Below are positions 39,701-42,700 of a DNA stretch of 64,000 nucleotides, one piece after another. The stretch comes from Tubulanus polymorphus (Eukaryota > Animalia > Nemertea): assembly GCF_964204645.1 (NCBI RefSeq), contig NC_134033.1:14516655-14580654 (forward strand), written 5' to 3'. Each line of letters begins with the position of its first letter. The first letter of the stretch is position 1. Both the position numbers and the translations under genes were made by a program. Below the pieces are notes generated by a model. It made no database searches. It was given only the letters and a program-made list of their open reading frames with translations, and had not been told where the DNA came from.

Positions 39701-42700
39701 TCGCCGTTCGAAATCATTCACAGCGGCATCGTCGGTAAATTACTGCAGTATTTGACGAGCAGTCCTGAAGGTGGCGCCGCCGCCGTGCCGCGGGAATTAC
39801 GTCTGCGTAGATTTCTGCATGTCTTCCTCGGTTGTCCCGTAAGTTCCGTATTTTATCCGATCTGTGGCCGGTTACGTCTGTGACCCGATTCATAATCCGC
39901 GACCTTGTATCTGAGAGTCGAGCTTAGAATAAGTTTTAAATTTCAATGACTTGACCAAAAATAATTCTCACGACTCTGTGCCACAGTGTTTGTCAGCAGT
40001 TAATTTTACTCTAGCTTAAAATAAGATCAATGTTTAACTTGAATTCTCTGGACTCTTTAGGTGACAATTATCGGTTAACCTTGATTCTCAACTTACGATT
40101 AGTTCGTTTTCAAATGATTTAACTCTTGAGGCAAATTCAGTGGATTGAGTTCTTGATTCTTGACTGATAAAATTTTGTTCTAATGATTTAACCCAAAACT
40201 AAAATGTAATAATAATAATAATAATAATAATGATGATCATGATTATAATGCGATTTATATAGCGCCAAATCCAGCCAGGCTGCTCAGAGCGCTTTCATTC
40301 GATCTCTTTACCATTGAACCTGGTTCTTGAACGTCTAATAGCCATTTTGTTCAAATGATCTAACCCGAAAGTAAAATATTTGATCTCTTTACTATTGAAC
40401 TTGGTTCCCCAATGTCTGATAGCCATTTTGTTCAAATGACCTAACCCGAAAGCAAAATATTTGATCTCTTTACTATTGAACTTGGTTCCCCAACGTCTGA
40501 TAGCCGTTTTGTTCAAATGATCTAACCCGAAAGCAAAATATTTGACCTCTTTACTATTGAACCCTTGTTCCCCAACGTCTGATAGCCGTTTTGTTCAAAT
40601 GATCCAACCCGAAAGTAAGATATTTGACCTCTTTACTATTGAACCCTTGTTCCCCAACGTCTGATAGCCGTTTTGTTCAAATGATCCAACCCGAAAGTAA
40701 GATATTTGACCTCTTTACTATTGAACCCTTGTTCCCCAACGTCTGATAGCCATTTTGTTCAAATGATCTAACCCGAAAGTAAGATATTTGACCTCTTTAC
40801 TATTGAACCCTTGTTCCCCAACGTCTGATAGCCGTTTTGTTCAAATGATCTAACCCGAAAGTAAGATATTCGATCTCTTTACTATTGAACCTGGTGCCCC
40901 AACGTCTGATTTTGTTTGTGTTTTTTTTCGCAGGCTCCTAACGTAAACGCGTTACACGAAATCGACGTGACTGTCAATCATCCTATGACCGCCCTCGTCA
41001 GTAAACTCATTCTCTGTCTTCATCAACAAGAACAGGTAATTTATAATTGATATATGAAATCATCGGTGGCGCTCGCCAGAGGCCAGTTGCACGGTCGTCG
41101 CTTAGATTTTATCAAAACTTAGATAAATGCGTAGATTTTGATAAAATCTAACAAGTTGAGGCCAGTCTTAGTTGAGAGAACCCCACAATAATAACGAAAA
41201 AACAAAGTCCAAAAATGTAACTGAAGCTAGTAGTTTATTCAATTTATTCCTGAAGATGACTATAAGAATATAGTCGAAACGTTGAATAAACTACACTAGC
41301 TCAAGGAATACAGTATTCCTGAAGATGACTATTAGGATATAGTCGAAACGTTGAATAAACCACACTAGCTCAAGGAATACAGTATTCCTGAAGATGACTA
41401 TTAGGATATAGTCGAAACGTTGAATAAACTACACTAGCTCAAGGAATACAGTATTCCTGAAGATTACTATTAGGATATAGTCGAAACGTTGAATAAACTA
41501 CACTAGCTCAAGGAATACAGTATTCCTGAAGATGACTATTAGGATATAGTCGAAACGTTGAATAAACTACCAGCTTCAGTTACATTTTCGGACTTTGTTT
41601 TTCCGTGATTATTGTCGGATTCTCTCTACTTAGCTTCAACACAGTGTTTTATCAATCGTAATGAGTCCAGTCTTAGTTAGGATTTAAGATCAGCTTCACA
41701 CGTACAAGTCTACCCAGAAGACAATCATGAATTCAGCTATTCAGTTTATAGTCGGCTTTAATGAGTATTTGTTGTAATTACACAGTTCCAGGTCAAGGTT
41801 CATGATTTGCCGAGTGGTGCTACGTCGTCTGGTCGCGGTTCTAACGCTCTGAAATTCTTCAACACCCATCAGTTAAAGGTATCGTAATTGATTTACCGTC
41901 CTCCGCAATGCCCGGGCGGCCGCTGACAGGAATCAGAAAAATCAGGGGAAACTCGCATAGAATTCGACAAACTTTATAAATCAAAAACCTGGAAAACTCG
42001 GTGAATTTGGATGATACTATTGACCTCGTGTTTCTTTATCAATACGTGATTAAAAATGAATGATTTGTAACTTGAATGATTGTTGAACCTCACGGTCCAG
42101 TTCCACAGTTCTGAGTTAAGATTTGACTCTGGGTTAAAAACATTGAAAATGAACTAACTTTAACTCTCAGAGTTAACTCTAACTCACAACTGTGGAACTG
42201 GGTCCAGGAATTCACTCAGGAGGTTTTGTGTATTCACATGGGAAACTCAGGGGATTTGTTTAATTGGTGGAAAGTGGCTGCATCCTGTTTAATAGCTTCA
42301 TCTTTTATCCATGCTGCTCAATGATGATTTAGTTTAATATTTGGATTTTCCGTTTCAGTGCAATTTACAGCGTCACCCGGAATGTACGAATCTGCGTCAA
42401 TGGCGCGGCGGACCGGTGAAAATAGATCCTCTCGCGCTCGTTCAGGCGATCGAGAAATATCTAGTCATGAGGGGATACGGACGAGTTCGACAGGTACGTA
42501 TCTACCACGGGAGCAGACGATCTACCCTTCACACGGGTTCAGCCCATCACGGGGATCTAGAAGCAGACGGGGTCCATCCATTCACAGGGGAAGATGATTT
42601 ACCCTTCACACGGGTCCAGCGCATCACGGGGATCTAGAAGCAGACGGGGTCCATCCATTCACAGGGGAAGATGATCTACCTTTCACACGGGTTCAACCCA

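Follow-up and report, generated by a model that had tools for sequence, protein, structure and literature searches.

Introduction

Penelope-like elements (PLEs) carry a minimal type-I hammerhead ribozyme (min-HHR), whose hallmarks are a long helix II (6-8 bp), a helix I of 4-5 bp, a conserved G10.1-C11.1 pair and a palindromic 15.2-16.2 segment without a loop 3 (Cervera & de la Pena 2014, PMC4209133). Its further features include a core of CUGANGA and GAAA and a nucleotide left unpaired between A9 and G10.1, and the motifs are often paired on opposite strands, 100-700 bp apart. In the same study, monomers of these ribozymes were not seen to cleave, and dimers or trimers did so at a low level. 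Here, a 64,000-nt stretch of the genome of the nemertean Tubulanus polymorphus (GCF_964204645.1, contig NC_134033.1, positions 14,516,655-14,580,654, forward strand; hereafter the window, to which unprefixed coordinates refer) was analyzed, in which five hammerhead units stand in tandem in an intron of the TRIP12 orthologue. The insertion that holds them is very probably a short non-autonomous PLE derivative, in which two copies of the PLE 3' end (the pseudo-long terminal repeat, pLTR) lie head to head, the hammerhead segment of one arm has been amplified to five 69-bp units, and the whole is carried as a passive passenger.

The insertion of PLEs and the existence of other tandem hammerheads provide the context for this locus. 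Frangieh et al. 2024 (PMC11167929) showed that both DNA strands are cleaved and extended by the PLE protein; they attribute an optional 30-40-bp tail, which they regard as a signature unique to PLEs, to the use of two start sites in reverse transcription. For the active PLE of that study, insertion in vitro did not depend on hammerhead cleavage, and none of the RNA-seq reads had its end at the cleavage site. Tandem hammerheads are also found in retrozymes, whose RNAs measure ~170-400 nt and carry canonical hammerheads (Cervera & de la Pena 2020, PMC7229834). A preprint proposes that retrozymes derive from PLE pLTRs, defines the non-long-terminal-repeat (non-LTR) retrozyme operationally by a type I hammerhead in each repeat, and finds retrozymes depleted in vertebrate introns (Li, Clavereau & Pollet 2026, 10.64898/2026.07.22.740005). 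The double-hammerhead satellites named in the part of PMC4209133 that cites Forster et al. 1988 are newt satellite 2, Schistosoma Sm-alpha and cave-cricket pDo500.

Comparison with described systems

The hammerhead of the window shares with the PLE min-HHR its core, the A9/G10.1 bulge, G10.1-C11.1, the long helix II, the short open helix I and the absence of loop 3. Further points in common are the location in the pLTRs of an element with reverse transcriptase (RT) and GIY-YIG domains, and the frequent occurrence as inverted pairs on opposite strands. What differs is the arrangement: a 69-bp head-to-tail array within a short derivative flanked by target-site duplications (TSDs), whose tandem junction adds a palindrome foreign to the parental pLTR. 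Judged by these sequence features, motif and origin belong to the PLE min-HHR family, and the likeness to retrozymes appears to be one of layout only.

That likeness had led an earlier note on this DNA to call the array a candidate miniature retrozyme. In common with metazoan non-LTR retrozymes (PMC7229834; 10.64898/2026.07.22.740005), it has tandem repeats with one type-I hammerhead per unit, target duplications, and a proposed derivation from PLE pLTRs with mobilization by PLE enzymes. In contrast, its unit is 69 nt long rather than ~170-400 nt, just as the earlier note had remarked; its hammerhead is minimal, with an open helix I, no loop 1 and no loop 1-loop 2 contacts; and the present copy is intronic, where the preprint finds vertebrate retrozymes depleted. 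The designation therefore fits the tandem layout, with one hammerhead per unit, and does not fit the size or the canonical hammerhead of known retrozymes. The double-hammerhead satellites, as far as that part of PMC4209133 describes them, likewise consist of tandem type-I hammerheads whose unstable helix III needs a neighboring unit to form an extended helix III. Their units measure ~330-500 nt, with a real loop 3 and demonstrated cleavage, whereas helix III here is 4 bp (ACGU/ACGU) and the cleavage sites are predicted ones.

Structure of the insertion and its hammerhead units

The insertion spans 493 bp (41174-41666) and is bounded by a perfect 12-bp direct repeat. Its components are as follows.

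41036..41785, + strand: host intron of the TRIP12 orthologue, GT (41036) to AG (41785), from a spliced RNA contig
41162..41173, no strand: target-site duplication, left copy CCAGTCTTAGTT, 12 bp, read from the sequence (identical 12-mer at both ends)
41174..41242, - strand: inverted tail-less arm, the reverse complement of PLE 3'-end sequence, from a repeat search
41245..41570, + strand: 69-bp tandem array, 4.7 copies, every junction being CAAGGAATACAGTATTCCTGAAGA, from Tandem Repeats Finder
41245..41288, + strand: hammerhead unit 1, with a 7-bp helix I (UUUAUUC/GAAUAAA) and a loop 2 variant, predicted cleavage after 41283, from the motif and the Rfam alignment
41314..41357, + strand: hammerhead unit 2, motif intact, predicted cleavage after 41352, identical to the PLE family A hammerhead
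41383..41426, + strand: hammerhead unit 3, motif intact, predicted cleavage after 41421, from the motif
41452..41495, + strand: hammerhead unit 4, defective, with G10.1 changed to U at 41465, which breaks the conserved G10.1-C11.1 pair, predicted site after 41490, from the motif and a helix II probability of 0.20
41521..41564, + strand: hammerhead unit 5, motif intact, continuing straight into the right arm, predicted cleavage after 41559, from the motif
41558..41633, + strand: right arm, PLE 3'-end sequence 3' of the hammerhead, terminating in GGATTCTCTC, from BLAST to PLE family A copies
41634..41666, + strand: optional PLE tail (..CAACACAGTGTTTTATCAATCGTAATGAG), at the right end only, from the ends of PLE family A copies and from paired copies
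41667..41678, no strand: target-site duplication, right copy, 12 bp, read from the sequence

Tandem Repeats Finder reports a period of 69 for the array, with 97% matches, and the C3 positions of the five units fall at 41250, 41319, 41388, 41457 and 41526. Each unit reads UAUUC / CUGAAGA / bulged U / GACUAU, a 6-nt loop, AUAGUC / GAAA / CG / UU, the predicted cut, and GAAUA. The core CUGAAGA ... GAAA ... GUU is found in 5/5 units, with C3-U4-G5-A6-N7-G8-A9, G12-A13-A14, A15.1-U16.1 and an H17 other than G all in place, and the unpaired nucleotide between A9 and G10.1 is a bulged U throughout. Helix II (GACUAU/AUAGUC) has 6 bp, helix I (UAUUC/GAAUA) has 5 bp and is open, and the palindromic 15.2-16.2 segment is A-CG-U (ACGU) with a zero-length loop, that is, no loop 3. 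The G10.1-C11.1 pair is G-C in units 1, 2, 3 and 5; because unit 4 carries U10.1, four of the five units are intact. The earlier note's account of five 69-bp units of minimal, tandem, PLE-type hammerheads, four of them intact, with predicted cuts at the positions listed above, is thus borne out as a description of the sequence and of its motif features.

The inverted arms and the 12-bp target duplication described in that note were also recovered. A repeat search places the arms at 41167-41242 and 41558-41633, over 76 nt with 89% complementarity. The left arm begins at GAGAGAA, which complements ..TTCTCTC, and toward the center it takes in part of an inverted unit, GTAGTTTATTCAA. At every junction between units of the array, the palindrome GGAAUACAGUAUUCC is present.

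The covariance-model check that the note had proposed gave a weaker result. A scan of the whole window with Rfam produced nothing at the gathering threshold. Hammerhead_1 (RF00163) aligned end to end (model 1-45) to 41244-41289 with 11.8 bits (E 6.4), below the gathering score of 34; this model handles helix II as an insertion and penalizes a zero-length loop 3. A search of the T. polymorphus genome with RF00163 matched nothing, but as it matched nothing in the control genomes either, this outcome carries no information.

A Penelope-like source element in the same genome

A search of the genome in six frames with Pfam GIY-YIG gave at least 150 matches, many in open frames of 817-841 aa, and the DNA from the match onward was examined at 25 places. 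In 13 of these (PLE family A), the identical 44-nt hammerhead lies ~660 nt after the start of the GIY-YIG match. The sequence beyond it matches the right arm of the window, tail included, at 77.6-83.8% identity within 41518-41662 (BLAST; loci L064, L066, L067, L069 and L070). In a full family A copy (L088 + L066), hammerhead, arm and tail precede an open frame of 841 aa with RVT_1 (E 5.3e-10) and GIY-YIG (E 9.4e-07), and recur after it. This is the pLTR-ORF-pLTR layout of a PLE (ORF, open reading frame), with the hammerhead resident in the flanking repeats. The partner RT/GIY-YIG element that the earlier note had suggested looking for is therefore present, with the same 44-nt hammerhead in both flanking repeats. 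From its sequence, the source family can be identified as an RT + GIY-YIG PLE that looks intact in this genome; the window copy, unlike it, is a non-coding derivative. Since both flanking repeats of this intact PLE contain the very same 44 nt, the hammerhead motif in the window is not a chance resemblance.

Two further PLE families carry hammerheads in a comparable position, with other helix sequences. That of family B reads CGC / CUGAUGA / U / GGCUAA..UUAGCC / GAAA CG UU, cut, GCG, and lies 662-668 nt after the GIY-YIG start; that of family C reads AGA / CUGAAGA / A / GGGUGGU..ACCACCC / GAAA UA UU, cut, UCU, ~410 nt after it. In a gap-free 44-column alignment of the three families, pairing holds in 93.4% of cells, compared with 27-44% in controls made by sliding the partner. 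Eight of the 13 helix pairs have changed on both sides, although family C, retrieved with a descriptor in which pairing is a condition, has an inflated share in this count. The invariant columns are those of the catalytic core, N7 excepted. Judged by sequence, architecture and covariation, the hammerhead is identified as a genuine PLE minimal type-I motif.

Several individual copies show features of their own. The bulged A and UA palindrome of family C were seen at L078, L083 and L084 (G000:C10:5898000-5899416, C3:20740300-20741762 and C1:19012284-19013800). At L088:1888-2030 (G000:C8, ~4646187-4646330), the reading frame of the 841-aa ORF already lies open within the upstream hammerhead (from nt 1905) and stays so through arm and tail. 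This copy has an AUG at the start of bulge and helix II (GAUGAC), as described for the anole PAc element, and the frame of this AUG stops after five codons. The family A copy at L068:633-665 (minus strand; G000:C1:16715900-16717230) has a duplication within the hammerhead (..GAAACGTATTAGGATATAGTCGAAACGTTG..), with two GAAAC segments per core. Two GIY-YIG open frames of 820 aa lie 5.5 kb apart at G000:C4:51569-57333, less than 60 kb from the contig start; for this family (L065, L087), the descriptor found no hammerhead within 1.4-1.9 kb. On C3, three same-strand arm/tail copies are spaced 6.6-6.8 kb apart, two in L061 (G000:C3:23996500-24006499) and the third at C3:24010231. No ORF of at least 150 aa was found in the 10 kb of L061, and the only one found at an arm/tail pair on C6 (L062) encodes 360 aa and looks unrelated. 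The L061 and L062 copies were rejected as full PLEs, as they lack matching ORFs, and the spacing of the L061 type may reflect a tandem segmental repeat rather than tandem PLEs.

Insertion signatures

The two ends of the insertion are asymmetric, the right end bearing a tail of ~33-45 nt that has no counterpart at the left. The same arrangement, one arm with a tail and the other without, was found in 12/12 paired copies at other loci, a count subject to ascertainment bias because the query contained the tail. In these copies, the tailed arm reaches query position 113 at least, and the short arm (query ~1-85) ends at 83-92. Target duplications measure 10-14 bp in six related copies: 12 bp in the window, 10 at L044, 13 at L020, 13-14 at L038, and ~13 with one mismatch at L036 and L055. 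The insertion bears two PLE signatures, namely the target duplication of 12 bp and the one-sided tail. As a test of whole-element copying against priming on both strands, the arms of the window copy and of L002 were compared; identities of 81-90% and one shared left/right difference favor neither.

These features agree in several respects with the PLE insertions of PMC11167929. PLE copies in this genome end at ..CTCCTCAT or run ~40 nt further into CGCGTCAACACGGATATTGTGTT.., so that full PLEs and short elements alike show two alternative 3' termini ~40 nt apart. The head-to-head arms fit priming on both strands, since cleavage and extension of both strands by the PLE protein would yield head-to-head 3' ends. 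The hammerhead layout GAUG...GAAACGU is that of the anole PAc element. The systems differ in the use of the start sites, which was equal between strands in vitro, whereas exactly one tail is seen in each of the 12 paired copies noted above. This regularity may mean that the whole hairpin element is copied as a unit.

A plausible course of events can be outlined from these data. The RT/endonuclease of a PLE would have inserted the element by target-primed reverse transcription, with the element arriving either as a whole hairpin-shaped non-autonomous RNA or through priming on both DNA strands. The shared GGAA(T/A)AC junction would then be the site at which the number of units changes, through unequal exchange, slippage or template switching.

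The 69-bp unit across the genome

With up to 1 mismatch allowed, the genome contains 1,485 copies of a 24-mer that spans the tandem junction and 0 of its reversed control; among the places listed, the junction clusters near chromosome ends. The hammerhead in its PLE context occurs 527 times along the chromosomes. These counts supply the copy number for which the earlier note had proposed a search, and they show the 69-bp unit to be a satellite found across the genome, mostly at chromosome ends, with ~1,500 junctions.

At the junction, ..CTCAAGGAA is followed directly by TACAGTATTCC.., and the GGAATAC of the center thereby adjoins the arm sequence CAAGGAAAC. As this junction is common to every array seen, the arrays descend from one duplication. 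Most of the diverged relatives are single elements, made up of a short inverted arm, an inverted hammerhead, a short center, a hammerhead and a long arm with tail. Other TSD-flanked arrays have 7 inverted units and 1 direct unit (L036/L002), 3 + 3 units (L055) and 4 units (L054). One single hammerhead element contains a (TAC)n microsatellite of ~100 nt within its arm, just after GAATAAACCAC (L029:1552-1650; G000:C6, ~3393874-3393972).

The host gene and its transcript

The host gene is TRIP12, encoded on the + strand, so the hammerhead units lie on its sense strand. The exon at 42359-42493, searched alone, matches the PDB TRIP12 chain 9gkm_A (E 2e-21), and a HECT domain follows downstream on the same strand (49696-50175, E 9e-39). 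Two sequencing runs contain the stretch, both as contigs: X1 (DNA) and X2, which is identified as RNA because its TRIP12 contig is spliced. This 3,664-nt contig joins 40934-41031, 41782-41876 and 42357-42494 without gaps, with a 4-nt ambiguity at the joint. Exon match, HECT domain and spliced contig agree with the placement, given in the earlier note, in the sense orientation within TRIP12 intron 41036-41785. As the spliced contig crosses this intron, it is removed normally. Subtracting the 502-nt insertion plus duplication leaves some 248 nt of unique DNA in the intron, and both intron flanks of the insertion are single-copy in the genome. At the TRIP12 locus, the element is most likely carried passively in the intron and excised along with it.

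Two other repeats lie close by. In the upstream intron, a second tandem array (40500-40910; 82-bp unit, 5.0 copies, 96% matches) stops ~25 nt 5' of the exon starting near 40934. In the next intron, a hairpin-forming repeat of ~130 nt (42084-42214) has several sub-threshold Rfam matches to microRNA precursors. Its summed depth reaches up to 175,535 in the DNA run and up to 80,914 in the RNA run, an RNA/DNA ratio far above that of the hammerhead unit.

Folding, sequence constraint and RNA

Folding energies were calculated with ViennaRNA. The double-hammerhead fold of two units has -12.3 kcal/mol and the best structure containing it -16.9, against a minimum free energy of -29.1, which places the fold 12-17 kcal/mol above the minimum. 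In the ensemble of the complete element, the two arms pair into a long stem, and the probability of helix II is ~0.98, falling to 0.20 in unit 4. Helix I has a probability of ~0 in units 2-5, because the GGAAUACAGUAUUCC palindromes of adjacent units pair together, and of 0.87 in unit 1, which is without that junction. The palindrome is missing from the parental PLE context (..CUCAUUAUUCCUGAAG..). The earlier note had described a junction hairpin that competes with this helix and could act as a built-in switch; the predicted competition holds, and the supposed switch is best seen as a by-product of the tandem junction, given its absence from the PLE context. Any self-cleavage would be expected to be slow, because the motif needs a dimeric helix III and the adjacent junction palindromes tie up the helix I strands.

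Sequence variation was compared among 41 array units from seven loci. The core carries 10 distinct variants over 12 positions (0.83) and the spacer 35 over 25 positions (1.40); since the numbers are small and the units not independent, there is no clear signal of selection on the core. Core-dead units are present at L003 and L004.

Contigs of the unit family are present in RNA run X2. The X2/X1 depth ratio of the unit is ~0.07-0.12, against 0.057 for an unrelated repeat, and this proximity means that carry-over DNA or background could account for the signal. Transcription of the 69-bp family is plausible. The release of 69-nt monomers and the severing of TRIP12 pre-mRNA, both envisaged in the earlier note, find no support: the double-hammerhead fold is predicted far above the minimum free energy, and the intron is spliced normally in the RNA run.

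Alternative explanations

The insertion could be read as a DNA-transposon miniature inverted-repeat transposable element (MITE) or foldback element, the hammerhead likeness of its internal repeat being accidental. The 76-nt arms with their 89% complementarity, together with the flanking direct repeat, would suit such an element, and the Rfam score of 11.8 bits is well under the cut-off. This origin is nevertheless highly improbable, because the ends are not mutual inverted repeats, the tail stands at one end only, the hammerhead is identical to that of the RT/GIY-YIG PLE, the arms are homologous to the 3' end of that PLE, and the helices covary across three PLE families. A cut-and-paste family would also give a fixed duplication length, and the variation from 10 to 14 bp argues against a MITE. 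Nesting of the array inside a separate MITE, as stated in the earlier note, was considered as well and rejected: both intron flanks are single-copy, and the asymmetric ends, the variable duplications and the PLE homology of the arms contradict it. That the array or its copy number is an artefact of assembly is scarcely credible. No single contig of the DNA run crosses the whole array, and repeats of this family easily collapse or expand; even so, DNA-run contigs cross both junctions between element and flank (X1 records 2 and 3: 40964-41196 and 41577-41912), similar TSD-flanked arrays exist at L036, L054 and L055, and the assembly has just 77 contigs.

The array might instead be an active miniature retrozyme, in which adjacent units adopt the double-hammerhead fold and cleave behind every GUU, so that 69-nt RNAs, linear or circular, are set free and the TRIP12 pre-mRNA is cut as well. 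Its tandem, bona fide min-HHR motifs, intact in 4/5 units, fit the operational definition of a non-LTR retrozyme, for which derivation from PLE pLTRs has been proposed (10.64898/2026.07.22.740005); unit-family sequence is present in the RNA run, and arrays of differing length occur in several TSD-flanked copies. Such activity is unlikely in view of the unfavorable dimer fold with its sequestered helix I strands, the poor cleavage of min-HHRs in vitro even as dimers and trimers (PMC4209133), and the core mutations in array units without clear depletion. TRIP12 mRNA is spliced across the intron, the RNA/DNA depth ratio is close to that of the unrelated repeat, and known retrozyme RNAs are both longer and equipped with canonical hammerheads (PMC7229834). 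It is also distinctly unlikely that the 69-bp arrays are the smallest retrozymes known, with 69-nt monomers cut, circularized and rolling-circle copied by the PLE RT, and that the TRIP12 copy is a self-cleaving module in the pre-mRNA. This proposal would explain why arrays of variable length are found in separate insertions and at chromosome ends.

Some points weigh against the interpretation of the insertion as a passive PLE derivative. Nearest-neighbor energies ignore tertiary contacts, co-transcriptional folding and proteins, so that weak cleavage in vivo may still occur despite the modeled energies. Contig-level data can show neither RNA ends nor locus-specific transcription of the array, and its copy number rests on the assembly, because no contig spans the array interior. 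The inflated contribution of family C to the covariation belongs here as well. Finally, the arms are only ~80% identical to the sampled PLE family A tail, so that their direct parent may have belonged to a different PLE lineage or to an old non-autonomous one that propagates itself.

Significance

As the evidence stands, the insertion is an ordinary intronic transposon remnant, one small copy among the many that this genome contains. Its kind, the PLE min-HHR, is already known; this copy is unusually short and lies in sense orientation in a spliced TRIP12 intron. Its value is that of a fully bounded example of a PLE hammerhead end becoming a satellite, with target duplication, inverted arm, array, arm and tail all present. 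The route from PLE end to retrozyme has been proposed for vertebrates (10.64898/2026.07.22.740005), and this locus shows it in an invertebrate, where the unit, at 69 nt, is unusually short. Cleavage of the units, if it occurred, would lower the known size limit of retrozyme-type RNAs and would put a self-cleaving module on the sense strand of an essential ubiquitin-ligase gene.

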